From Isurus oxyrinchus (lineage: Eukaryota), in assembly GCA_026770705.1 (NCBI GenBank), contig JANJGN010000071.1, positions 2,294,001 to 2,358,000 on the forward strand: 64,000 nt of DNA. Direction: 5' to 3'. Under the pieces are notes generated by a model. The model was not told where the DNA came from and searched no databases. It saw nothing but the letters and a program-made list of their open reading frames with translations. Shown here one piece after another: positions 3,061-35,226 of this stretch (its first letter is position 1; the number at the start of each line of letters is the position of its first letter). Position numbers and translations under genes: made by a program.

Positions 3061-3383
3061 AGGACCGGACTCAACAAGGCAGATTGCAGGTTTACCAACA
3101 GAAAGTGAACAACAATTTATATTTAAAGGGAAGAGAGTGCTGGTTAATCAGCAAGTGGTCTCTGATTGGAGGAGGTGTTGCCATGGAAAATAATGTGTGT
3201 GAGATGTAAAGTTTAGACAGCTTGTCTCTTCATTCAGCAATAATCAAATAAAGATCAGTTAACTTCTATTGACTGTGAAGCACTTTGAGAGGCATGAGAA
3301 TGTGGACACTGAGAACGGGCTGCACTGTCAGAGGGTCAGCGCTGAGGGAGTGCTGATGTAGAATGAAGGGTGTCCGTTCTTAC

Positions 3384-3671
3384 CTTGCACAGTTAGTATG
3401 AGGGTCCGCTCCGATGAAACAGATGGATATCTCACTCTGCAGCTGAGAGTGTGTCCGTGGTGTTTGAGTGATGGGATCAGGGTCAGAACAGAAGTATAGG
3501 TCAGAGTGACACCATGCTGAGTTACAGTGTTTGAGACTGATCCAGGTACGTCAGTGGGAGTGTCCCAGGTTAAGACAGGTGCTGCTGTTCCATTGCACGT
3601 TGTGTTGAAGGTGCAGCTTACATCCACACGCTTTCCTGCAATAATTTCAGCAGGGAATATCGTGGGTTTAT
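3384..3671 (-). CDS. Gene A: Siglec C2-set domain exon (cryptic in-frame acceptor)
   Basis: DKPTIFPAEIIAGKRVDVSCTFNTTCNGTAAPVLTW...LSCRVRYPSVSSERTLILTVQ; CAG acceptor, GTAAG donor, phase 1-1; near-identical to 58530..58826. Confidence 0.85.
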
Positions 3672-4138
3672 CTGTGACACATGTGGAGATATTAGTGACA
3701 GCTGGCCAGAAGAGGTCGGTGTTATGGAAAGACAGAGAGAAAGAGACAGAGAGACACAGCGAGAGAGAGAGAGATAGGGAGAGGAAGAGGGAGAGGGAGA
3801 GGTTTAGGGTGGGAACTCTAGGGTGGTGAAAGGCGCTGTAGAAATGTAAATCTTTCTTCTGTCGATATGTCAGACTTCAAGACAGGATTTGAGAGATTGA
3901 TGGGAGTGGATAAACTGATAACATTGATAGACACAGTCAACACATTTAATCATTGATATTAAAGTAAGTATTAGAGGTTGCTTTAGGACTGAACTGGAAG
4001 CTATCATCAGGTTATTGAGAATCAGACAGTGTGTTATAATAACCTGTGTTTTGTGTTAATATGTAAACATCACAGTTTGTGTTATTTCCCATTGAGTGTT
4101 GAATGTGAATTGTTGAGTAATTATAACACAGCACTTAC

Positions 4139-4507
4139 CAGAAACGTGAAGCTGGGTTACAGGGTAATAGTTATAGCTCGGACCATTGTCAAATTCTATT
4201 CTGAAAAAATAAGGTCCTGCATCTTCCCGTCTGATGTTGTTTATAATCAGGGAACAGTCGCCATCTTTCAGGTCTCCAGACAGCCGGATCCGATGGTGGA
4301 ACCGTGGTAACTCGTGACTGTGATCCTTGGAGTGAAAGGCAATGGGAGCCCAGGGAATCTGTTTCTCATTATTAAACCAGACTCCACCTCGCGGTTGGTT
4401 TTCCAGACACGATGGATAACTGTAATGACATGGAATCTGTACACAGGAACCTTCCTGAGCTGTCACCTCTCGTGGAGTGTCACCTTTCCACTCTTGTGAC
4501 AGTCCAA
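4139..4507 (-). CDS. Gene A: Siglec V-set exon V1 (essential Arg present)
   Basis: 369 bp, AG/GT, phase 1-1; SCVQIPC, GDLKDGDCSLII, DAGPYFFRIE motifs. Confidence 0.93.
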
Positions 4508-4559
4508 CTGGGGAGAGAAATCTCAATATTTATCTCTGGATGGCTTGTGGATCCACTAG

Positions 4560-5350: not shown

Positions 5351-6418
5351 TCCTACATTCTTACCATCTTAAAATATTAAAGCTGCAGAATAAACATGCA
5401 AGTGACTGACCCGCTCGACCCACCTTCCATCTGGGGGTCCCATGGGGAGGACCCTTCCTGAGCCAGATCCACCAGCCAACATGGTCTAGATCTGAGCACA
5501 GGAGACACTGGGGGGAGTGACTAACAGGCTCCTTGTGACAGGCCCCGTCTGTCCAATGGCTGGCTTTCAGCTGCCAAGGCCAGAGTGGTCCTTGCTAAAA
5601 CCGGCTCAGGACAGGCCAGGACCCCTGTGCAGACCCCCTCCAGCGCTGCAGCCTCTGTACAAACCCCTCATGCGCTTGTGGAGAGACACAAACAAGGCTG
5701 CACATTACCGAGGAGAATCCCCTCTACAGACTAAGGTGCTGACTCATCACCCTAAACTCGGCAAATGAGGAGGCTCTCGCTCGGTATCGGGGCGTGGCAT
5801 TCGCTCAATAAAAATAATCAAATGACATTTGGTCAGAAATCTAAGGAGGTTGTACATTCCCTCAAAAATAAGACTCGATCTGGGGTCGAGAGTCAAAGGG
5901 CAACAACTTATATTTTCACAACAACTTTAACATGACAAATCACCCCAAGGTGCTACACAGGAGCGTCATAAAACAAAGTATGTCACCCAGACACGTGTAG
6001 ATATTAGCGACAGCTGACCAGAAGAGGTCGGTGTTATGGAGAGACAGAGATAAAGAGACAGAGAGAGAGAGAGAGGGAGAGATTTAGGGTAGGAACTCTA
6101 GGGTGGTGAAAGGCGCTGTAGAAATGTAAATCTTTCTTCTGTCGATATGTCAGACTTCAAGACAGGATTTGAGAGATTGATGGGAGTGGATAAACTGATA
6201 ACATTGATAGACACAGTCAACACATTTAATTATTGATATTAAAGTGAGTATTAGAGGTTGTTTTAGGACTGAACTGGAAGCTATCACCAGGTTATTGAGA
6301 ATCAGACAGTGTGTTATAATAACCTGTGTTTTGTGTTAATATGTAAACGTCACAGATTGTGTTATTTCCCATTGAGTGTTGAATGTGAATTGTTGAGTAA
6401 TTATAACACAGCACTTAC

Positions 6419-6787
6419 CAGAAACGTGAAGCTGGGTTACAGGGTAATAGTTATGTCTCGGACCATTGTCAAATTCTATTCTGAAAAAATAAGGTCCTGC
6501 ATCTTCCCGTCTGATGTTGTTTATAATCAGGGAACAGTCGCCATCTTTCAGGTCTCCAGACAGCCGGGTCCGATGGCGGAACCGTGGTAACTCGTGACTG
6601 TGATCCTTGGAGTGAAAGGCAATGGGAGCCCAGGGAATCTGTTTCTCATTATTAAACCAGAGTCCACCTCGCGGTTGGTTTTCCAGACACGATGGATAAC
6701 TGTAATGACATGGAATCTGTACACAGGAACCTTCCTGAGCTGTCACCTCTCGTGGAGTGTCACCTTTCCACTCTTGTGACAGTCCAA
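6419..6787 (-). CDS. Gene A: Siglec V-set exon V2 (essential Arg present)
   Basis: Duplicate of V1 with intact splice sites, DAGPYFFRIE. Confidence 0.93.
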
Positions 6788-6839
6788 CTGGGGAGAGAAA
6801 TCTCAATATTTATCTCTGGATGGCTTGTGGATCCACTAG

Positions 6840-9945: not shown

Positions 9946-10191
9946 GGTGTAGTGGGGAGGAGATACTTCACTCAGGGGGCAGGTGTCATCACCCCTCAGC
10001 TCGGTTTATGTTACAGCTATGATGTGGATACAATCACACACAATAAGCTTATGGATCTGGGAGCAGAAATAGACAAATCATTAAAAATAGTGGCGCTGGT
10101 TAACACGGCCAAAAAACAAGCAGATCAAACACTATTATTTCCCATTGAGTGTTGGATGTGAATTGTTGAGTAATTATAACACAGCACTTAC

Positions 10192-10566
10192 CAGAAACGT
10201 GAAGCTGGGTTTCAGGACGGTCGTTGTATCTATTCCTGTTGTCAAATTCTAGGCTGAATAAATAATATCCTGCATCTTCCCGTCTGATGTTGTTTATAAT
10301 CAGGGAACAGTCGCCATCTTTCAGGTCTCCAGACAGCCGGGTCCGATGGTGGAACTGTGGTAACTCGCGATTATGATCCTTGGAGTGAAAGGCTATAGAC
10401 CGTTCATTCCATTTTTCCCAATTCCTTCTCATATACCAGATTCCGACTGGTGATCTCGCTACTAAATATGATGGATAACTGTAATTACATGGAATCTGTA
10501 CACACGAACCTTCCTGCGCTGTCACCTCTCCTGGAGTGTCACCTTTCCACACTTGTGATAGTCCAA
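10192..10566 (-). CDS. Gene A: Siglec V-set exon V3 (essential Arg replaced by Ser)
   Basis: 375 bp, AG/GT, phase 1-1; DAGYYLFSLE where paralogs have DAGPYFFRIE. Confidence 0.9.
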
Positions 10567-10969
10567 CTAGGGAGAGAAATATCAATATTTAACTCTGAAT
10601 GTTTTCTCAATCCACTAGACTCAATATCCAACCCCTCCATCACTGGGGCACACAGGCTGCAGTCTGGATAATCCACAGGTCACACAATGAATGCCCCAAG
10701 GTTTCACAACAGATTGAAGAGAATTCCGGACACAGGAGTGGACAAATTCATTCTAAATTGGCTCATGACCCTCAGGTACCTATTTAGTGAAGTCAGTCTG
10801 CCACCCAACACAGTGTCTACAAGACACACTAATTGAAGTGAGTTCACTGCTGATTTACAACGTAGGACAATGGATTAGGAGCCTTCAGAATTCCCCCATT
10901 ATCACCATCATGAATCATGAATTGGCCTAGCTGTCCTAGATCCTCAGTGTCTAAGGCAGTGGTTCCTAT

Positions 10970-11895
10970 TGTGATGTAAGTATAATAATTTTCATAATAT
11001 TTTATAGTATATTGTGAAATAGGTTTATGGGGGTACGCGTGATGGGTCTGCATGTGATTTAAGTACATTTGGAGTTAATTAGATTGGAAGTTTAAAATGA
11101 TCAAAAGGAGCTAGGTGCTTGACATGCTATTGAGGAAACATGGATGCTGCTTAGCATGGAAGGTATGAAGAGAATTTGCATTTTTCTATCAATGAAGGGG
11201 TTGTTGGATTTCAAAGGAATCTTAGCTTGTTTACAACTAGCCAGATAAGCAAGACTAAGGAATGTGTTTATTTTTCTCAAAGGCTCCTGGCAATATGGGC
11301 ACCACAAAAGAGTTTGTTATGTGGAAGATACAGTTTCAAAAACATATGGAACAATAGAATTTTCATGTTACAAAGAGAGAAATATATATCTATCAGGGAG
11401 AATGAAAGGCTATGTGTCAGAATGCCATGTAAGATCTAACACGAGTGTGTGATATAGTCTTAATGAAACCTCTAGCATTTGTGCACAAGCCTGCTATCCA
11501 ACAGAACTGAAGTTGGGGAAAAGCCACTTGGAATTCCTCTGTGGCAGGGTATTGCTTTTATATTGTGTTAACTTGCTGAGTTGTTTTAAATATAAAGTCT
11601 ATTTTTGGACCGTTGCCTTAAAGGGAGTGTAACTGGGAGTCAGTTTAATTCGGAATTTTAAGAATTATTATAGTGGTAATTGTAGAGTTATGTATGTGCT
11701 TCAAATCATTTATTTTGAGAGCAAGTATTTTAATTTAATTTTTAAATCTCTAAAGGTCTTGGTGTAATTATTGCTTCTGAATTCAGTGCACACATCTCAT
11801 AATAAATACAAATTGCAAAATCATTATGATCATGTGACCACCTTTCTCTCATGGACTTGGTCTGCCTGGCACACATCACCTGCCAAGTGATAACA
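10970..11895 (+). mobile_element. Solo LTR-like element
   Basis: TGTGATG...ATAACA termini, AATAAA near the 3' end, layout similar to the elements at 21057 and 25509. Confidence 0.6.
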
Positions 11896-23545: not shown

Positions 23546-24323
23546 TTTGTTCCAACTTTATATTTTATATATTCATTCTTCCATGGGAAGTGGGCATCAC
23601 TGGCTAGGCCAGCATTTATGGCCCATCCCTAATTACCTTGAGAAGGTGGTGGTGAGCTGCCTTCCTGAACCTCTGCAGTCCATGTGGTGTAGGTACACCC
23701 ACAATGCAGTTAGAGAAGGAAGTCCAAGATTTTGACCCTAGTGGCAGTGAAGGAATGGCGATATATTTCAAAATCAGGATGATGTGTGTCTTGGAGGCGA
23801 ACTTCCAGGTGGTGGTGTCTGGGCATTTCAATCCCTTGTGACAATAAATGTAATATTATAGAAAATGCAAAGGCTTCTTGTAATCTATCACAGAATAAAC
23901 AAGTTGCAGAATTCAGAAAGCACTTTCTGAAATGTCAACAAAGTTCAGTGACATCACATTTCTGCTAATTACTATTCGGCCATGTTGGCTGCACGCAGTC
24001 AGGCAGTCCCTCGGTTGTGATGTGTCCACACAGCAGTACTGGGATGCATCAGCATCAAAGGACATGCTTAGTTGTTGCCGTGCAATGCATTTATTGCGAG
24101 GCTGTTGCACACACGCCCTGTCGATGGACCCTCCGAATTACCATTCTGAATCGAGGCAGATCAACTTTCCTGCAACAACTTGCATTTATATGGCACACTT
24201 AATGTAACAAACTGTCCCCAATCTCTTCAGGGGATTGTTACCTACATATAAATCCATCTCAGAGACACATAATGAGGTATTAGGGACAGGTGACAAAAAG
24301 CTGATTTCACAAAGCCAGTTAAT

Positions 24324-24505
24324 NNNNNNNNNNNNNNNNNNNNNNNNNNNNNNNNNNNNNNNNNNNNNNNNNNNNNNNNNNNNNNNNNNNNNNNNNNNNN
24401 NNNNNNNNNNNNNNNNNNNNNNNNNNNNNNNNNNNNNNNNNNNNNNNNNNNNNNNNNNNNNNNNNNNNNNNNNNNNNNNNNNNNNNNNNNNNNNNNNNNN
24501 NNNNN
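24324..24505. other. Assembly gap (others at 39593-39811, 41060-41199, 42418-42595, 43513-43762)
   Basis: Runs of N. Confidence 1.
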
Positions 24506-24704: not shown

Positions 24705-24953
24705 TCAGTTTCTCTTGAATCTGATCTGTGCGTATTCCGTCTGCTCTTCCCTGTGGACAGACCCATCACCACTGGGCACCCTGAAGACTTGGGGATTGGC
24801 GTAGAGAAGCTCGTCGGGATTGTCAGGGTTCCCATGTCCAGCATCGCCTCCCACTGCACATTCAGAGACACCCCGGGGAGCTGGGGTCTCCCCCTCGCTA
24901 GTTGTGTCTCTGGTTGTGTTCCGGGGCTCAGTAATCAGCACGTTCTGTTTACC
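24705..24953 (-). CDS. Siglec terminal cytoplasmic exon, orphan copy (LLYANP, TEYAQI)
   Basis: 249 bp, acceptor tttctctgtag, phase 0, ends in stop; AATAAA at 24090-24095; paralog of 47302..47550. Confidence 0.88.
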   Translation of the reverse strand, partial: GKQNVLITEPRNTTRDTTSEGETPAPRGVSECAVGGDAGHGNPDNPDELLYANPQVFRVPSGDGSVHREEQTEYAQIRFKRN

Positions 24954-25099
24954 CTACAGAGAAATGGAAACAGAAGGCATCCTCACATCATTTACTGGCA
25001 CTGATAGGGTTAAAATATTCTGCAGCCTCGTTAGTGTCAGTCGTGGGTCAGTGGGTTTAACCCTCTCTCACATGTCTTATGAAAGAAAACACCTATGGC

Positions 25100-25378
25100 A
25101 GTGCAGTGCTCCCTCAGTACTGACCCTTCGATAGTGCAGCACTTCCTCAATGCTGACCATCCAACAGTGCAGCACTCCCTCAGTACTGACCCTCCGACAG
25201 TGCAGCGCTCCCTCAGTACTGACCCTCCAGCAGTGCAGCACTCCCTCAGTACTGACCCTCCGACAGTACAGGTCTTCCTCAGTACTGACCCTCTGACAGT
25301 GCAGCACTCCCTCAGTACTGACCCTCTGACAGTGCAGCACTCCCTCAGTACTGACCCTCTGTCAGTCTTGCACTCCCT
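25100..25378. repeat. 30-bp minisatellite array in the last Siglec intron
   Basis: CAGTGCAGCACTCCCTCAGTACTGACCCTC units. Confidence 0.95.
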
Positions 25379-25508
25379 CGGTAATGGCTCTGGCCAGTGT
25401 CGGCTTGGATTCTGCACTCAGGTGCCTGGTGTGAGGCTCAATAACATGAATCTTGTAATCAGAGAGAGGATGAGAGAGAGAGAGAGAGATGAAGGGTCAG
25501 AGACTGAG

Positions 25509-26266
25509 CGTTATGAATCTATTAATGCATGTATTGTAATTGGAAATTGTCTTTTTAAACAGCGGTTTAGTCTGTGGGTGTGTGTGTGTGTGTTTTAATT
25601 GGATTAAAGACAGCCGGTCTGAGTACTTTTATGTATAGTAGTTTTGAGATGTAAACAAAGAGGTAAAGAGGCATATTGCATTTTTAAAAGGAGGATTCAA
25701 AGCCTGGGAGTGAATTCTTAAACCAATCAATGTTTATATTACTAATAAAATTGATACTATGAAACGGGATTTATAGTTAGAAGAGATGGAGGTCAAAGGT
25801 CCTGATGATACAATGAGAATTTACATTCAAAGAGAAGAGCTGGGTATAACTTGAGCAGTTTTGTGTGTGCAGAGCAGAGGCTTGTAACATCAAAGCAGCT
25901 GTAAGCCTACACCTGTCTGCAAAGGAACCAAAGTGAAAGGAACCTCATTTGGAATTTCTGAGGTGAAAATGCTTCGCTTGGAATCTGCTTAAAGTCTATG
26001 GGTTGTCTTAGAGGACGTTAGTTTGGGAATTTGTTAAATAGTTATGATAATACTAGTTTGTAGCCATGTGCATATGATTAACTTGTGAAAATTAATAAAT
26101 GTCTCATGTAGTTTGATATAAACCCATCTCAAGAACTGATGGTCTTATTCCTGAATTTAGAGCTGCATCTCAAACATTCCACTGGGAAATATAGGTTATG
26201 ACAGTTGTTTAAAGTTTCCCTCTGGGATTTTAAACAACAGCCTTTACCAGTTGCTGTGTCATAACA
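25509..26266 (+). mobile_element. Solo LTR-like element in the Siglec tail intron
   Basis: Similar to 21057..21885, ends ATAACA; absent from the paralogous gene B intron. Confidence 0.7.
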
Positions 26267-26401
26267 GAGAGACAGCATGATACTGAACCATTGCTGACTC
26301 CACAGGTACAAATCAGTGGGTAACTGGGCTGGGAATCTGGGACATGTGTTGTCTACACACTGAGATTGAAGCTTTGGAGTGAGTGTAAACAGCTCCTGTA
26401 C

Positions 26402-26483
26402 CTGGTGTTTCACAGAGAGTGGACTGGGGGTCAATGCAATGTCACTGGTCCCTGAAACTCTCTCCTCCATCGCTGTCTTTCTC
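26402..26483 (-). CDS. Siglec membrane-proximal cytoplasmic exon, orphan copy (RKTAMEERVSGTSDIALTPSPLSVKHQ)
   Basis: 82 bp, phase 2-0, paralog of 48476..48557; no TM exon seen upstream of it. Confidence 0.8.
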
Positions 26484-26614
26484 CTGTAATAACAAAATAT
26501 CACACTGTGGTTATCATATAGCAGAGAGTCAGTGTAGCACAGACACAGAGCCCACTGTAATCTTAGACCAACGACTGGGACTGTCTCTTTAAATCAGTTC
26601 TATACAAAGCACAG

Positions 26615-27075
26615 AATCAAGAAGCTTGACACCATCCAGGACAAAGCAGCCCGATTGATCTACACCCCATCCCCCACATTAAACATTCACTCCCTCCACA
26701 ACGAACACACAGTGGAAGCAGTGTGTGTACCATCTACAAGATGCACTGCAGCAACTCAGCAAGGCTCCTTCAACAGCACCTTCCAAACCCACGACCTCTA
26801 CCATCTAGAAGGACAAGGGCAGCAGACACATGGGAACACCACCACCTGGAAGTTCCCCTCCAAGCCACTCACCATCCTGACTTGGAAATATATCATCGTT
26901 CCTTCACTGTCACTGGGTCAAAATCCTGGAACTCCCTCCCTAACAGCACTGTGGGTGTACCTACACCACATGGACTGCAGCGGGTCAAGAAGGCTGATCA
27001 CCACCACCTTCTCAAGGGCAATTAGGGATGGGCATTAATGCTGGCATCACCAGTGACAGCCACATTCGATGTAAG
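26615..27075 (+). mobile_element. LINE 3' fragment (same family as 340..660)
   Basis: KLDTIQDKAA..TIYKMHCSNS..KSWNSLPNSTVG..HHHLLKGN. Confidence 0.85.
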
Positions 27076-27402
27076 AATTAAAAATCTCACAGCTCAATGT
27101 ATTTATTGGGATCCTCCTGCACACACGCCCTGTCGAAGGAGCCTTTGTGGTTCCATTGTTAATCGAAGCAGATCAGACTTACTGCAACTACTTGCATTTA
27201 TATAGGACCTTTAATGTAGCAAAATGTCCCAAGGCTCATCCGGGAATTGTTAGTCACATCTTCACCTGACTCTGAGGCACATGAGGAGATATAAGGGACA
27301 GGAGACCAACAGCTGAGTCAACAAAGTCAGTTATTAACGGGCATCTTAAAGGAGGAGCTGGAGATAGAGAATGAGTGACAGACACAGAAAGAAAGACAAA
27401 GA

Positions 27403-27441
<39 letters not shown>

Positions 27442-27638
27442 TGAATCTCCATCCCCAGTGGCTCAGCATCCAGTCCTCTCTGGAGAAGCATTTCATTCCA
27501 AACCACAGCAACCGCAGCCCAATCGCATCCCTTCCTCCCTCTCTCCCCCTCTCCCCCAGTGGGTTGTTTCCTGTTCCCAGGAATCTCAATCACTACCCCC
27601 ACCCTCACACCTCCTCACTCCCACTCCCCATTTCTCAT

Positions 27639-27887
27639 TCAGTTATGCTCGAACCTGATCTGTGCGTATTCCGTCTCCTCTTCCCTGTGGACAGACCCAT
27701 CATCACTGGACATCCTCAATACTTGGGGATTGGCGTAGAGAAGGCCGTTGGGATTGTCGATGTGCCAATGTCCAGCATCGCCTCCCAATGCACCTTCAGA
27801 GAGACCCCGGGGAGCTGGGGTCTCCCCCTCACTAGTTGTGTCTCTGGTTGTGTTCCGGGGCTCAGTAATCAGCACGTTCTGTTTACC
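27639..27887 (-). CDS. Siglec terminal cytoplasmic exon (LLYANP, TEYAQI), downstream of the hepcidin-like exons
   Basis: 249 bp, phase 0 acceptor, stop codon, AATAAA at 27102-27107. Confidence 0.88.
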   Translation of the reverse strand, partial: GKQNVLITEPRNTTRDTTSEGETPAPRGLSEGALGGDAGHWHIDNPNGLLYANPQVLRMSSDDGSVHREEETEYAQIRFEHN

Positions 27888-28034
27888 CTACAGAGAAATG
27901 GAAACAGAAGACATCCTCACATTATTTACTGGCACTGATAGGGTTAAATTATTGAGCAGCCTCATTAGTGTCAGTCTTGTCTCAGTGGGTTTAACCCTCT
28001 CTCTCATGTCATCTGAAAGAAACCACCTATGGCA

Positions 28035-28440
28035 GTGCAGTGCTCCCTCAGTACTGACCCCCCCGACTGTGCAGCACATCCTCAATAGTGACCTCACACT
28101 CCCTCTGTACAGTGCAGCACTTCCTTAGCACTGACCCTCCAACAGTGCAGCACTCCCATAACACTGACCCTCTGACAGTGCAGCACTCACTCAGTACTGA
28201 CCCTCCATCAGTGCAGCACTCCCTTAGCCCTGACCCTCTGACAGTGCAGCACTCCCTCAGTACTGACCGTCTGACAATGCAGCACCCCCTCAGTACTGAC
28301 CCTCCGACTGTGCAGTCCCCCGCCGGTACTGACCCTCTGACAGTGCAGCACTCCAAGACTGACCGTCTGACAATGCAGCACCCCCTCAGTACTGACCCTC
28401 CGACTGTCCTGCCCCCCCGCCGGTACTGACCCTCCGACAG
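28035..28440. repeat. 30-bp minisatellite array at the Siglec/hepcidin-like junction
   Basis: Tandem 30-mers; similarity to the Siglec intron ends here. Confidence 0.95.
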
Positions 28441-29973
28441 CTCGGTAATTTCTCAATTATGCCTGGTGGTCCTTTTAACTCAGAGCTGAGAGTTGCAGAG
28501 AATCGAGCACACATCCTGAACTGACACTTGCAGGGCAAGTACTGGGAGCGCGCTGGTCATTATCATGCTGCTGTCTGTGGGATCTTACTGTGCGCCAATG
28601 GCTGATTCTTTTCCCACAGTACATCAGTGACCTCACATGAAAGAAAAAAAGCACTTGATTGTCTGCGAAACACTTTGGGACGTCCTGATGTGTTGGAAGG
28701 CGCTAGAGAAATGCAAGTCCTCTTTGTCTTTCACTTGATCCTCTAAGGTGTCTGTTGATTAACCAGCCTCTCGGTGTTTGATGTAGGCCTGGTTATAAAC
28801 AGTTAGAAGGATCAAATATCAAAAGTGCTTTGGCTGACAGTCAAACCGATTGTGCATTCGGAGAGATTAGATACGGTCTGCACACAATGACTCCAGTCTC
28901 TGGCACTGACTGCCGCCTGGGGTCTCCCTTCCACATAACACTCACAACTTGCATTTACACAGCGCCTCTGATATTGCAAAATGTCCCAGCCCACATTACC
29001 GGAGCGTAAATCAGAGAGAAGTCTAACACTGAGTCACATATGGAGATATTAGGGATAGGTGACCAAAAGCTTGGTCAAAGATGTCAGTTTTTAAGGAGCG
29101 TCTTAAAGGAGAGAGAGAGAGAGAGGCAGAGAGGTTAAGGGAGGGTATTCCGGAGCTCAGGGCCCCAGGCAGCTGAAGGCACGGCCACCAATGGTGGAGC
29201 GATGGGAATCAGGGGGACCCGGGAGATGCAGTAATGTCAGAGATTTTGGAGGAACATCGGGACCGGAGGAGGTGTTCTCCTGCTCCATATCTCTCTCTCT
29301 CTTCCTCTCATCCACTCCTCCTCTCCCTGTCTCTCTCTCTCCTACTCTTCCTCTCAATTGCCCTCTCTCCCAATCTTTCTCTCCTCTCTCCCTTTTCCTG
29401 TCTCTCTCCCTCTCTCTCCCCTGTCTCCTTCTCCCACTCTGTATCTCTCCCTCTCTCTCACACTATTTTTGTAACTTTCGCTCACTCTGTAACTCTCCCT
29501 TTCCTGTTAATTTCTCTCTCTTGGACAATCTCTCTTCCCTTTTCACTTTCCCTCACTCTGCATCTCTTCTTTAATTTCTCCCTCTGTCACTCTCTCCCAC
29601 CTATGTTCTTTCCCTTTCACCCCTCCCTGTCCCACTCTCTGTCTCTCTCTTCCAATCCCTCCCTCCCCCATTCCATCCCTCTCTCCGACTCTCGACTCCC
29701 AGCCTCTCTTTAACCCACTCCCAGGCTGGATCAGTCTCCCTCTCACTATTCCCGGCGTGGGTTACATTTAAAATTCCTGTGGGGATATGTTCACTTCCTT
29801 GGAATTGCCTCTTCCCAGCTTTGCAAAAAAATTGAGGGGGGGTTCGATTTCAAACATGCCTCCTGAGTATAACCGAGACAGACTGCCACTGAAATCAGCT
29901 TGAAATCAGAAAACTTTCTGTGGAAGAAACGAGCAGGGAGAAACCTTAAAATAAGGAATGAATTTCCACCTAC

Positions 29974-30030
29974 CGTGTCCGGGGAATCCACAGATTTCTC
30001 AATCGTCGAAGAACCTAAAGCAGTGTCAAC
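29974..30030 (-). CDS. HAMP: Hepcidin-like exon 2 (prodomain VDTALGSSTIEKSVDSPDT)
   Basis: 57 bp, acceptor ctttctttttgcag, donor ACG|GTAGGT, phase 0-0; size, phase and an E-x-SVDS motif resemble hepcidin exon 2. Confidence 0.65.
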
Positions 30031-30132
30031 CTGCAAAAAGAAAGAATTTATCAGGGAGAAAGTGAGAGGAGGATTGAGGGAGAGGGAGAGAGAGAGAGAG
30101 AGAGGTACAGGAGAGAGAGGGGGAGGAGGACA

Positions 30133-30430
30133 GACTTGCATTTCTCTAACGCCTTTCACCACATCCCAAAGCATTTCACAGCCACTGAAGGATGTTTTTG
30201 AAGTGCACTCACACTGTAGGAAATGTGGCAGCTGATTTGTGCACAGCAAGATCCCACAAATAGCAATGTGATCATGGCCTAGATCATCTGTTTTTGGTGA
30301 TGTTGGTTGAGGGATAAATATTGGTCCCAGGACACCGGGGAGAACACCCCCTGCTCTTCCTCCAAATAGTGGCTGTGGGATCTTTCACACCCGCCGAGAG
30401 GGCAGACGGGGGACTCAGTTTAATGTCTCA
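30133..30430 (-). mobile_element. Deu-domain SINE (SacSINE1/AmnSINE1-like)
   Basis: Reverse complement of ggtgtcctgggaccaatatttatccctcaaccaacatcac...cacattgctatttgtgggatcttgctgtgcacaaat and an L2-type tail. Confidence 0.75.
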
Positions 30431-30442
30431 TTCAACATTGAT

Positions 30443-30655
30443 GTGCTCCCTCAGTACTAACCCTTTGACACTGCAGCACTCCCTCAGTACTGACCCTCCG
30501 ACAGTGCAACACTTCCACAGTACTGACCCTGTAACAATGCAGCACTTCCTCAGTACTGACTTCCGACAGTATAGCACTCACTCAGTACTGTCCCTCCAAT
30601 AGTGCAACACTTCCACACTACTGACCCTCTGACAGTGCAGCACTCCCTCAGCACG
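30443..30655. repeat. 30-bp minisatellite array
   Basis: Same unit as 28035..28440. Confidence 0.9.
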
Positions 30656-30719
30656 GAGTGTTGACCTACGTTATGGGACTGAATTCCCTGGAGTGAGACT
30701 CAGACCAGAGATTTAGGTA

Positions 30720-31460
30720 GGGTTGTTCCGGCTGGAGGAGGTTACAGAGATAGGGAGGGTTGTAGAGGCTGTAGGAGGTAACAGAGATAGGGAGGATTCT
30801 AGAGGCTGTAGGAGGTTACAGAGATAGGGAGGGTTGTAGGGGCTGTAGGAGGTTACAGAGATAGGGAGGTGAGTAGGGGCTGTAGGAGGTTAAAGAGATG
30901 GGGGGGTTGTGGGGGCTGGAGGAGGTTACAGAGGTAGGGAGGGTTGTAGAGGCTGGAGGAGGTTACCAAAATAGATACTGTTGTAGGGGCCACAGTAGGT
31001 TACAGAGATAGGGAGAGTTATAGTGTGGAGAGGACGTTATAGAGTTCATGAGCATTGTAGGGGCTGGAGGAGGTTACAGTGATTCTGAGGGTCGTGGGGC
31101 CTGGAGGAGGTTACAGAGATAGGGAGGGTTGTAGGGTCTGGAGGAGGTTACAGAGATAGGGAGGGTTGTAGGGGCTGGAGCAGGTTACAGAGATAGGGAG
31201 GGTTGTAGGGTCTAGAGGAGGTTACAGTGATCATGAGGGTTGTGGGGCCTGGGGGAGGTTACAGAGATAGGTAGGGTTGTAGGGGCTGGAGGAGGTAACA
31301 GAGATAGGGACAGTTGTAGGGGCTGGAGGAAGTTACAGAGATAGGGAGGGTTGTAGGGGCTGGAGGAGGTTACAGAGATAGGGAGGGTTGTAGGGGCTGG
31401 AGGAGTTTACAGAGATAGGGAGGGTTGTACGGGCTGGAGGAGGTTACAGAGATAGGGAGT
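30720..31460. repeat. ~34-bp G-rich minisatellite (GGCTGGAGGAGGTTACAGAGATAGGGAGGGTTGTA)
   Basis: About 20 tandem units; inverted copies at 32203-32425. Confidence 0.95.
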
Positions 31461-31660
31461 CGCTGAGGAGGGATTGAAAACAAGAATGAGAATTTCAGGG
31501 GAAACGACAGAAGGAAATGATGTTAAATTCATAGAGGGCGACAATATTAAAGGCACGAACATAATAATATCAACCTGCAGAAGAGACCAGTCTATCTGGG
31601 TGGTAGACGTAGAGTCATGTGCAAGAAACACCTCACCCAGAGGGACATCTCTTAGCTTAC

Positions 31661-31753
31661 CCTCGACAAGGAGAAGAAGTGACTCAGCTGCAGGGAGAGC
31701 AGCAAAGTCAGAGTGAACAAGACAAGTCGCCATTTCATCTGGGAGCTTCCCAT
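31661..31753 (-). CDS. HAMP: Hepcidin-like exon 1, signal peptide MGSSQMKWRLVLFTLTLLLSLQLSHFFSLSR
   Basis: 93 bp from ATG to AGG|GTAAGC (phase 0), hydrophobic core; resembles human HAMP exon 1 (MALSSQIWAACLLLLLLL..., 30 codons, phase 0); HAMP is adjacent to MAG and CD22 in mammals. Confidence 0.7.
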
Positions 31754-31822
31754 CTCTGCCTGTCTCTTCTGATCTTCTGGCTCTGCTTTGATGCTTTGGT
31801 TTGTAACTAGAGGAGCTTCCTG

Positions 31823-32040
31823 CTCTTATACCTGAAACACTTGAAGGGGACAGCCGGGGGCGGGTTGCTGTGTGGTATCACACCCATTTCTGGATATTGC
31901 AGTGTCGATGTTCCCTGTCCCACTGGCCTGGGACCAGCAGTAAGGTCACTGGGACATTGACTGTCTGGCGCCGAGAACTATCAGTCCCTCCGCAACGCCC
32001 TTCACCTTGTGCAAATATGTGTTCATATTGACGCAACACA
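31823..32040 (-). promoter_or_regulatory. Hepcidin-like promoter: TATA box, BMP/Smad element, C/EBP-like and FoxA-like sites
   Basis: TATAAGAG at 31823-31830, 70 nt upstream of the ATG; GGCGCC (31967-31972) abutting GTCT/AGAC (31963-31966); TTGTGCAA, GCAAATA and TTGACGCAA at about 32007-32036. Confidence 0.65.
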
Positions 32041-32202: not shown

Positions 32203-32425
32203 TGTAACCTCCTCCAGCCCCTACAACCCTCCCTATACCTGTAACCTCCTCCAGCCCCTACAACCCTCCCTATCTCTGGAACAGCTTCCAGCACCTACAA
32301 CCCTCCCTATCTCTGTAACCTCCTCCAGCCCCTACAACACTCCTTATCTCTGTAACCTCCTCCAGCCCCTACAACCCTCCCTATCTCTGTAACCTCCTCC
32401 AGCCCCTGTAACCCTCCCCATCTCT
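32203..32425. repeat. Inverted copy of the ~34-bp minisatellite
   Basis: TGTAACCTCCTCCAGCCCCTACAACCCTCCCTATCTC units. Confidence 0.9.
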
Positions 32426-33365: not shown

Positions 33366-34462
33366 ATATTCCCCCAGCAACTCAGCAACTCCTCCAGTGA
33401 AACATTTCAGAGCAGCTGAGCTTGGTTTTCTGGAACCAGTCTCGGCCCAGAAGACTAGGGCCCTCACCTGTCGCTATGATCACTGGAAGCTGGGCTGTCT
33501 GCTGCCTGTAGGACACAGGTACTGGGATGAGGTCCTTTCCCTGTATGGATTCTCCAGTGTGTGTCTTCAGCTGATCCATTGTTGGCTCTAAATTCAGCGT
33601 CTGGGTTCCTTCATTTAGCTGTTTAAATGTGGGCTCTTCCACCACTGTGTCTGAGGCTCCCGTATCTGCCCCATTACTAGTGGCTGCCCATTCACTTGGG
33701 TTGTGATGGTTATAGGTTCAGTTTTTACCGCTGTGACATTGGACAGGGAATAGACATCGGTATCAGCAGCTTCAGGCTCTGTGATATTATTCACTTCCAT
33801 CATGTTGGTGCACTGTCTGATGGGCTGTCTCGATTTCACCCTGCATTGCTTTATTACCCACCCCTTTCTTGTGGCAGTGATGGCATTCTGCTCCCTTGAA
33901 CCTGCAGGTGTCCGGTACGAGCTCACTCCCCCCCACATCGAGAACAGGCCAACTTCGGAGTTGCTGCTGAAATACTCCCACGAAGCCTTTTAGTTTCTGG
34001 AGCGGCAGAGACTGTCTCTCGCTTGGCGGCTGTCTCTCTCTCTCTCTCTCCAGTTTGAGCCTCACGCCCGGTGGTTGTTTCCTGTCCCAGCTGAGGACTG
34101 GCGCCATGTTGCACATCCTGTAAATCCCGCCAGTCTCTCCCAGCACTTTCCATGCCTGGCGCTATTTCCATGGTGCGCTTCAAATCGATGTCGGCTTCTG
34201 CGAGTAAACGGCTCTGAATGGCGTTGGGGTGAACGACACAAACCAATCGGCCCCGCAACATGTCATTGAGTGTGTCTCCGAGGTCCCAGTGCTCAGTCAC
34301 CTGCTTCCACTTCACTGTATAGGTTGCGATGGACTCACCCGGCGCCCTTACTCTGGAGTTAAACTTAAACCTTTTCATTATTACCCACGGCTTCAGCTGA
34401 AAACACATCTTCATGAGGTCGACTAATTGGTGAAAAGATTTAGAATTGGGTGCAATGCACGT
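33366..34462 (-). mobile_element. Ty3/Gypsy gag-protease fragment
   Basis: KRFKFNSRVRAPGESIATY..LNDMLRGRLVC..IQSRLLAE; zinc-knuckle CSRCGG..CHHCHKKG; protease region VNGQPLVM..GPSLLGRDW. Confidence 0.9.
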
Positions 34463-34726
34463 CACTGTCTTCAGCTCTGAGACTGTCAATCCTCACCAAA
34501 CAATTCTTCCCTTCCAAGTCGCCGATTATTTTAGCACGTCCCACGAATGTGGGATCTTTGGTGTATGTGATGGTATATTTCCATCTATACCAATATTTAT
34601 ACCAAGCTCCGTGCAGTGCTGTGTAAGAGTGGGAAGGAAAGTCAAAGCTACACGGAATAACCACACAAGAGCTGCTGATGGCCCTCCGAGGCAGCGCCTT
34701 CATAGACCATCCCTCTGACTTGACTC
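34463..34726 (-). pseudogene. Gene C: MAG/sialoadhesin-like V-set exon truncated by Gypsy sequence
   Basis: Acceptor ctttcag, phase 1; SCVVIPCSFDFP..LHGAWY..FVGRAKIIGDLEGKNCLVRIDSLRAEDS then runs into gag before the F-strand Arg. Confidence 0.85.
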
Positions 34727-34789
34727 CTGAAAGGCAACAAGGGAGGGGACTGAACATCAAAAAGCAGAATATTACTTCAATGGAGAGAA

Positions 34790-35226
34790 GTATGCGGTAC
34801 AGAGGGATCTGGGTGTCCATGTACATGAATCACAGAAAGTCAGCATTCAGGAACACCACGGAATGAGGAAGGCAAGTGGAATGTTGGCCTTTATTGCAAA
34901 GGGATGGAGTATAAAAGGAGGGGCGTCTTGCTACAACTGTACAGGGCGTTGGTGAGATTGTATCAGGAGCAGTGTGTACAGTTCTGGTCTCCTTACTTAG
35001 GGAGGGATAGACTCTGCATTGGAGGCAGCTCAGAGGAGGATCACTGGGCTGATTCCTGGGATGAAGGGGGTTTGTCTTATGAGGAAATGTTGAGCAGGTT
35101 GGGCCCTGTATCCATTGGAGTTTAGAAGAATGAGAGGTGATCTTATTGAAACATATAAGATTCTGAGGTGGTGGGGGGTTTGACAGGGTGGATGCTGAGG
35201 GGATGTTACCCCTTGTGGGGGAATCC
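34790..35226 (+). mobile_element. CR1 LINE fragment
   Basis: MEYKRRGVLLQLYRALVRLYQEQCVQFWSPYL. Confidence 0.9.

Follow-up and report, generated by a model that had tools for sequence, protein, structure and literature searches.

The DNA analysed here is a 64,000-nucleotide (nt) stretch of the Isurus oxyrinchus genome (contig JANJGN010000071.1), which we call the window and whose numbering we use for all positions. On its minus strand lies a unit that begins with a promoter and two short exons of the hepcidin type and continues downstream with exons that encode the cytoplasmic tail of Siglec-type receptors, in the order tail exon A, a juxtamembrane exon (cyt1-B, 26483-26402) and tail exon B. 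An earlier examination of the letters, the sequence-only reading, had proposed this unit as a candidate chimeric gene, and the exons, promoter, TATA box, splice sites and AATAAA signal that it described are all present in the sequence (Table 1).

Hepcidin exons, Siglec tail exons and the missing hormone exon

A motif scan of the promoter located TATAAG at 31830-31825 and GGCGCC at 31972-31967, the latter followed by AGAC at 31966; statements about control of the unit refer to these sequence motifs only. Exon 1, with a hydrophobic core of KD(15) = 2.06, ends in the donor GAGG/GTAAGC after 31661 (a slash marks the exon boundary). Exon 2 has a good polypyrimidine-AG acceptor, TTTTTGCAG/G, and the donor ACG/GTAGGT.

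Both exons were found to match a shark hepcidin gene. A search of 5.8 billion sequences with the 57-amino-acid (aa) open frame around exon 1 returned two matches, both from LOC144671611 of the basking shark, Cetorhinus maximus (E = 2.8e-7, 94% identity over the exon). Isoform X2 of that gene (XP_078389754.1; P0002) is a typical prepro-hepcidin of 88 aa with an REKR site and a 29-aa mature peptide containing eight cysteines, and it passes the Pfam hepcidin model PF06446, which spans residues 53-87, that is, exon 3 only. Exon 1 is identical to residues 1-31 of P0002 at 29 of 31 positions (94%) and exon 2 to residues 32-50 at 16 of 19 (84%). The variants private to this copy in exons 1 and 2 are Trp8, Arg31, Thr34, Leu36 and Ser39. 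The two exons are colinear with P0002, with matching exon boundaries, 31 + 19 codons and phase-0 introns, and exon 2 was recovered within the window by tblastn with P0002 at E = 2e-6. With E values of 2.8e-7 and 2e-6, the match is therefore more than chance. Submitted singly to Pfam, exons 1 and 2 and the tail exons gave no match, being very short queries. Shark hepcidins, for example P0002 and hepcidin-1 of Heptranchias perlo (XP_067831448.1; P0003), resemble the locus in their 31- and 19-codon phase-0 exons and in their TATA promoter. Judged by this homology, exons 1 and 2 derive from a hepcidin gene, in line with the sequence-only reading.

The locus differs from P0002 in that it has no third exon, no RX(K/R)R site and no eight-cysteine peptide. 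Six-frame regular-expression scans of both strands and tblastn with P0002 found no cysteine-rich mature-peptide exon (furin site plus eight cysteines, C-x-x-CC-x-CC ... C-x-x-CC) in the window, as the sequence-only reading had reported for the minus strand downstream; the spurious tblastn matches were translations of a 33-bp minisatellite and of (TG)n repeats. No RX(K/R)R convertase site occurs in exon 1, exon 2, tail A or cyt1-B, and the sole R-x-K/R-R match is the C terminus of tail B. Because the window lacks an exon with a furin site and eight cysteines, the locus is, on this evidence, hepcidin-derived but unable to make hepcidin. It is in this sense that the hepcidin pseudogene named by the sequence-only reading as an alternative also holds.

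Siglec-like genes stand in a tandem cluster on the minus strand of the window. The V-set exon at 59603-60070 passes the Pfam V-set and Ig_CD22 models, and its best solved relatives are Siglec-5, MAG, Siglec-8, CD33 and sialoadhesin (E = 1e-15 to 1e-12), from which it follows that the cluster is Siglec. This exon belongs to a complete Siglec gene, consisting of a V-set exon, C2 exon, immunoglobulin (Ig) repeats, transmembrane (TM) exon, juxtamembrane exon and tail exon C, in which the TM exon ends in phase 2, the 82-nt juxtamembrane exon has a phase-2 acceptor and a phase-0 donor, and the tail exon is phase 0. Human HAMP likewise sits inside a Siglec cluster, of the MAG/CD22 type.

The third exon of the hepcidin-derived unit, tail A, belongs to a set of three similar tail exons. 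The tail A segment 27442-28060 is 88% identical to the tail B segment 24508-25126 over 619 nt, a stretch that takes in 170 nt of upstream intron as well as some of the 3′ untranslated region (UTR), and 86% identical to tail C over 402 nt (blastn). In the coding part, tail A shares 90.7% nucleotide identity with tail B and 82% with tail C; tails A and B do not differ at all over their initial 56 nt, and many differences between them fall across 27656-27818. Tail A carries LLYANP at the position of the immunoreceptor tyrosine-based inhibitory motif (ITIM), where proline at +3 fails the consensus, TEYAQI, which is ITIM-like or like the immunoreceptor tyrosine-based switch motif (ITSM), and an NTT sequon. 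These alignments identify the third exon as paralogous to the last exon of a bona fide Siglec gene, the type to which the sequence-only reading had assigned it. The proximal ITIM reads LLYANP in tails A and B and the consensus LFYANI in tail C, and TEYAQI is kept in all three.

Tail A has the acceptor TCTCTGTAG/G (also read as CTCTGTAG/G) and, five codons ahead of its stop, an internal phase-2 donor, CAG/GTTCGA, after 27655. The GT of this donor is also present in tail C, and tail B has AT there. The next exon, cyt1-B, shares 80% aa identity with the equivalent exon of the complete gene at ~48.4 kb and has no TM exon ahead of it at the hepcidin-derived locus. The interval from 24 to 34 kb is free of Ig and TM exons save for a truncated V-set at 34443-34826. 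No Ig exon separates exon 2 from the tail exons; V-set and C2 exons are present in the neighbouring complete gene. A nucleotide search with 49300-49700 found no second copy of the TM exon elsewhere in the window.

The exons fit together in frame. Exon 1, exon 2 and tail A (93 + 57 + 249 nt) make 132 codons plus a stop with all joins in phase 0. Tail A up to 27655 and cyt1-B (233 + 82 nt) make 105 codons, and the whole chain by way of tail B has 237 codons plus a stop.

Table 1. Coordinates of the hepcidin-derived unit, the minisatellite arrays and the surrounding Siglec-like exons
Feature	Position	Strand	Remarks
Promoter and 5′ UTR of the hepcidin-derived unit	31754-31972	-	direct reading and motif scan; RNA-like contigs over 31726-31900
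Exon 1, coding part (signal peptide)	31661-31753	-	93 nt, 31 aa, ATG at 31753, phase-0 end
Exon 2 (hepcidin pro-region)	29974-30030	-	57 nt, 19 aa, both ends phase 0
Alternative exon entered from exon 2	28704-28788	-	acceptor AACCAG/G at 28788; 9 codons then stop, giving a 59-aa frame
Siglec tail exon A	27639-27887	-	249 nt, 82 codons + stop (27641-27639)
AATAAA 3′ of tail exon A	27102-27107	-	second signal at 27215-27210
Siglec juxtamembrane cytoplasmic exon (cyt1-B)	26402-26483	-	82 nt; acceptor TTACAG/G phase 2, donor CAG/GTACAG phase 0
Siglec tail exon B	24705-24953	-	probable last exon of the 237-aa frame; linked through a 17-nt loose end at 26401 only, which fits tails A and B equally
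33-bp minisatellite array upstream of tail A	28101-28440		homology of tail A and tail B segments ends here
33-bp array before tail B	25099-25383		homology of tail A and tail B segments stops here
33-bp array in intron 1	30446-30651		unit and orientation as in the arrays upstream of tail exons
37-bp minisatellite array in intron 1	30714-31459		20 copies; inverted partner at 32203-32425 (6 copies), upstream of the promoter
Three paralogous tail exons	24705-24953 (B), 27639-27887 (A), 47302-47550 (C)	-	
V-set exons	4056-4526, 6336-6806, 10100-10585, 59603-60070	-	Siglec-like cluster
C2-set exons	3328-3627, 58495-58773	-	Siglec-like cluster
Run of near-identical Ig exons	50-58 kb	-	Siglec-like cluster
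TM exon	49529-49431	-	complete Siglec gene
Juxtamembrane exon	near 48.4 kb	-	complete Siglec gene

Splice joints and predicted products

A search of public runs found none with sequence of the locus that is on record as RNA. Three small runs from one sample (runs X1, X2 and X3) contain 36-58% of the words of 27080-31860, and we mapped their contigs onto 26100-31900. We treated these runs as complementary DNA because exon-exon joints in them have CT..AC ends, which is GT..AG on the minus strand. Run X4, from another, related species, has contigs on repeats only, leaves exon 1 and tail A uncovered and carries no weight either way.

Both junctions predicted by the sequence-only reading were found. 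Exon 1 is joined to exon 2 (31661>30030) in all three runs. Exon 2 is joined to tail A (29974>27887, CT..AC ends) in one contig of run X1, with 26 nt on its shorter side and two ambiguous bases, and we infer that this contig represents RNA. The exon 2 donor at 29974 takes part in three different joints in the contigs. The joint 29974>28788, again with CT..AC ends, is present in runs X1 and X3 and leads into the alternative exon. Loose ends at 29973 (runs X2 and X3) continue from the end of exon 2 into a hepcidin exon 3 that is absent from the window, translates as GSLLQRQKRM in run X3 and includes a convertase site.

Downstream, the joint 27655>26483, from the internal GT of tail A to the normal acceptor of cyt1-B, was found in all three runs. 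At 26401 a loose end continues with the opening 17 nt of a tail exon, and the chain presumably goes on to tail B, outside the mapped stretch. One contig covers 27656-27818 without differences and is specific for tail A, and a few low-depth contigs lie on the 3′ UTR of tail A (27009-27349). These data suggest that tail A is used mostly as an internal exon, although contig depths cannot rank the forms. The sequence-only reading had envisaged a 132-aa protein ending in a terminal tail exon. Its frame is open and its junction exists, but splicing has at least three outcomes (59, 132 and 237 aa), of which it is one; likewise, the tail exon has the stop and AATAAA of a terminal exon but is also an internal one, its donor at 27655/27654 being used in all three runs.

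At the other end of the unit, RNA-like contigs of runs X1 and X2 reach beyond the TATA box on its upstream side and show two differences from the window (31861-31866: C>T, T>A), which suggests either an upstream start site or a near-identical paralog.

It is conceivable that exons 1 and 2 of this copy are silent. The transcript with tail A, cyt1-B and tail B would then be that of a degenerate Siglec gene with its start farther upstream, such as the V-set at 34.8 kb, and the exon 1-2 signal and the exon 2>tail joint would come from a similar copy elsewhere. Short contigs cannot phase the joints, the mapped stretch ends at 31900 so that upstream joints into 27887 would be visible only as loose ends, and a truncated Siglec V-set does exist at 34443-34826. 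However, the contigs on exon 1 and exon 2 agree with the window without a differing letter, and both introns of this very copy are represented by unspliced contigs. A retroelement interrupts the upstream V-set, which has no C2 or TM exons after it. We regard this explanation as unlikely, and even if it were correct a chimera of hepcidin exons and a Siglec tail would still exist in the genome.

The predicted products of 59, 132 and 237 aa all have the signal peptide, and no hydrophobic segment follows exon 1 in tail A, cyt1-B or tail B. The products would be soluble, acidic and probably disordered, in the lumen of the endoplasmic reticulum (ER) or secreted. Siglec tyrosine motifs act by recruiting cytosolic SH2 phosphatases. 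Because no isoform has a TM segment, the motifs of these products would lie in the secretory lumen, and would therefore have no contact with cytosolic kinases or SHP phosphatases. The ratio of nonsynonymous to synonymous substitution (dN/dS) is ~1 for the tails (0.9-1.6 among tails; 23-44 substitutions). Taken together, these results make it likely, in our judgement, that the locus is an expressed, truncated hepcidin paralog that has captured orphan Siglec exons, and that the chimera is a by-product of rearrangement, probably without function.

Several points weigh against this interpretation. The runs come from a single biological sample and their RNA status is taken from the joints. The joint 29974>27887 was seen in a single contig, in one of the three runs, and could be exon 2>tail B, because the first 56 nt of the two tails are identical and the contig may not separate them. 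Paralogs have the last 11 codons of exon 2 in common, and because the 3′ end of exon 2 is identical among them, exons 1 and 2 in RNA are not assignable to this copy alone; intact paralogs may account for much of the signal on exons 1 and 2, or exon 3 may persist in an allele of the locus. The dN/dS is also ~1 between tails B and C, with few substitutions, and does not discriminate; and all three frames are intact, which could mean retention by selection and not decay. The caveats on assignment leave the chimera standing, as the joint can form only where a single pre-mRNA carries both a hepcidin exon 2 and a Siglec tail exon. The chimeric transcript of hepcidin exons and a Siglec tail is real.

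A different view of the product is that it is a functional, lineage-specific new gene, secreted by the liver under hepcidin-type control, built from a Siglec tail and kept by selection. The 132- and 237-aa frames are open through two independent in-frame splices, junction contigs exist, and tail A keeps its NTT sequon, which would be usable in the ER lumen. Yet no role is known for the tyrosine motifs outside the cytosol, proline already stands at +3 of the ITIM position, and the tail dN/dS is ~1. The phase-0/phase-0 match had a one-in-three prior, and no annotated protein that combines hepcidin exons with a Siglec tail was found in any species searched. We therefore consider a functional new gene very unlikely. 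Its most elaborate form, a retained new gene, possibly in several copies, that encodes a liver-secreted, iron- or inflammation-regulated, glycosylated, disordered polypeptide made from a formerly cytoplasmic signalling tail, is highly improbable; were it true, coding sequence would have moved across the membrane to its opposite side and acquired a new role.

Minisatellite arrays and the origin of the locus

Minisatellite arrays of a 33-bp unit stand in intron 1 and ahead of tails A, B and also C, all in one orientation, and the homology between the tail A and tail B segments ends in them (Table 1). The array at 28101-28440 is thus a likely recombination breakpoint, as judged from where this homology stops. 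We found that a contig of run X1 skips 130 nt (28293-28424) within this array, the sampled animal and the assembly differing here in length by about four repeat units.

A breakpoint within a repeat raises the question of whether the locus is an assembly artefact, in which a misjoin or collapsed repeats hide exon 3 of a normal hepcidin gene and the joints come from other loci. The candidate breakpoint does lie in a 33-bp minisatellite array that is difficult to assemble, the array differs in length by 130 nt in run X1, and the loose ends join exon 2 to a real exon 3. There is no assembly gap between exon 2 and tail A, the nearest run of N being at 24324-24505. Unspliced intron 2 contigs run nearly continuously from 30002 to 28375, into the array, at 98-100% identity. 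Contigs of an independent sample thus track the window across 1.6 kb of unique sequence in intron 2 and enter the array (29781-30001, 29188-29742, 28760-29099 and 28424-28733), and because they match the window, the order from exon 2 to the array is the same in that sample. The exon 2>tail joint, moreover, requires both exons on one pre-mRNA. An artefact of assembly accordingly seems to us very unlikely.

In the reading we favour, of a truncated hepcidin paralog with captured Siglec exons, the locus would have arisen as a partial duplicate of a shark hepcidin gene that kept the promoter, the signal-peptide exon and the pro-region exon and lost the exon with the furin site and eight cysteines. 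We infer that exon 3 was most likely lost by unequal recombination within the hepcidin/Siglec tandem cluster, with the breakpoint in the 33-bp array. Recombination between 33-bp arrays would swap hepcidin exon 3 for a tail exon, and the hepcidin 5′ half would land upstream of Siglec cytoplasmic exons left as orphans, without Ig or TM exons of their own. With the promoter presumably active, or the unit at least transcribed, the free exon 2 donor would take the next usable acceptor, either the cryptic one at 28788 or that of the Siglec tail at 27887, and the frame would stay open because both introns are phase 0. Splicing from the internal GT of tail A to the juxtamembrane exon and on to a second tail exon would be in frame again.

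The 37-bp arrays are a separate feature of the locus. They flank the promoter and exon 1, 743 bp apart, as inverted arms of up to 223 nt that are 89% complementary, and could permit inversion or hairpin formation around the promoter.

Related chimeras and the surrounding cluster

Isoforms of the basking shark gene offer the closest comparison. LOC144671611 isoform X1 (XP_078389753.1; P0004; 131 aa) and isoform X3 (P0001; 87 aa) resemble the Isurus transcript in that hepcidin exons 1 and 2 are spliced in frame to foreign terminal exons, without a hepcidin domain. LOC144671611 keeps its true exon 3, whereas at the Isurus locus the chimera is the only outcome allowed. The foreign exons also differ, being a reverse-transcriptase fragment in P0001 and, in P0004, a stretch antisense to Siglec 5′ regions found here; neither is a Siglec coding exon. 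Because these isoforms join foreign exons, the exon 2 donor is promiscuous and readily captures foreign acceptors in a highly expressed gene. In the window, the non-hepcidin C-terminal part of P0004 matches 60110-60271, 10619-10798 and 11479-11541 on the plus strand at 58-90% identity, antisense and just upstream of Siglec V-set exons. These stretches represent either a repeat or a conserved antisense exon.

An all-length HMMER search with P0002 against 1.84 billion cluster representatives found 13 relatives. Those that match through exon 3 are ordinary shark and fish-type hepcidins, and only P0001 and P0004 match by exons 1 and 2 alone; none of the relatives joins hepcidin exons to a Siglec tail. 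A search for homologues of tail A among proteins of 45-143 aa found none, and no 132-aa model with tail A is on record. A like search with the open frame around exon 2 (region 60-100) also gave no match but carries no weight, as it missed P0002 and P0004, both of eligible length and with seven 5-residue words in common with the query. A literature search turned up no account of the structure of shark hepcidin genes or of hepcidin-Siglec fusions; hepcidin is listed among nurse-shark plasma proteins (PMC9207270).

On the Siglec side, the tails of CD33-related Siglecs and CD22 are like those of the locus in having a membrane-proximal ITIM position and a distal TEY-x-x-I/V in the terminal exon. 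In contrast to inhibitory Siglecs, the Isurus transcript has no V-set, C2 or TM part, its ITIM position LLYANP fails the consensus, and its tail would be lumenal or secreted. Jingwei in Drosophila and TRIM5-CypA in monkeys are chimeric genes of retroposition origin with known functions. They share with the Isurus unit a promoter and 5′ part of one gene joined in frame to unrelated exons and transcribed, and differ from it in that here the rearrangement would be at the DNA level, between neighbours, with no function evident.

The locus can be viewed as exon shuffling between old neighbours, as hepcidin and MAG/CD22-type Siglecs have been adjacent since before the split of sharks and mammals. 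The phase-0/phase-0 match keeps the frame of the chimera open and a strong promoter would expose its product; the minisatellite arrays may drive rearrangement in the hepcidin/Siglec cluster. For practical purposes, counts of shark hepcidin copies based on exons 1 and 2 alone would be inflated, and expression read on these exons combines the signal of true hepcidin and of chimeric transcripts. A functional product, which is unlikely on current evidence, would be a rare reuse of a cytoplasmic tail outside the cell.

The stretch 26682-27069, between tail A and cyt1-B, shows a contig pile-up from all four runs, including that of the other species, with back-joints 26970>26915 and 26970>26919. This abundantly transcribed repeat has further copies at 23572-23653 and ~45055-45115. 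The truncated V-set at 34443-34826 is most like sialoadhesin and MAG (E = 1.6e-7) and stops short of its F strand. A gag-like open reading frame (ORF) at 33923-34489 on the minus strand overlaps it, and further retroelement-like ORFs extend down to ~33.0 kb; the region 33923-34826 is probably a Siglec pseudogene broken by a long terminal repeat (LTR) retrotransposon. The Siglec gene that ends in tail C contains a recently expanded exon array, in which eight to nine nearly identical Ig exons lie on the minus strand at 50080-58320 in ~1.1-kb units, with a (TG)n-rich stretch after each; the units at 58066-58320 and 50080-50400 are internally deleted.

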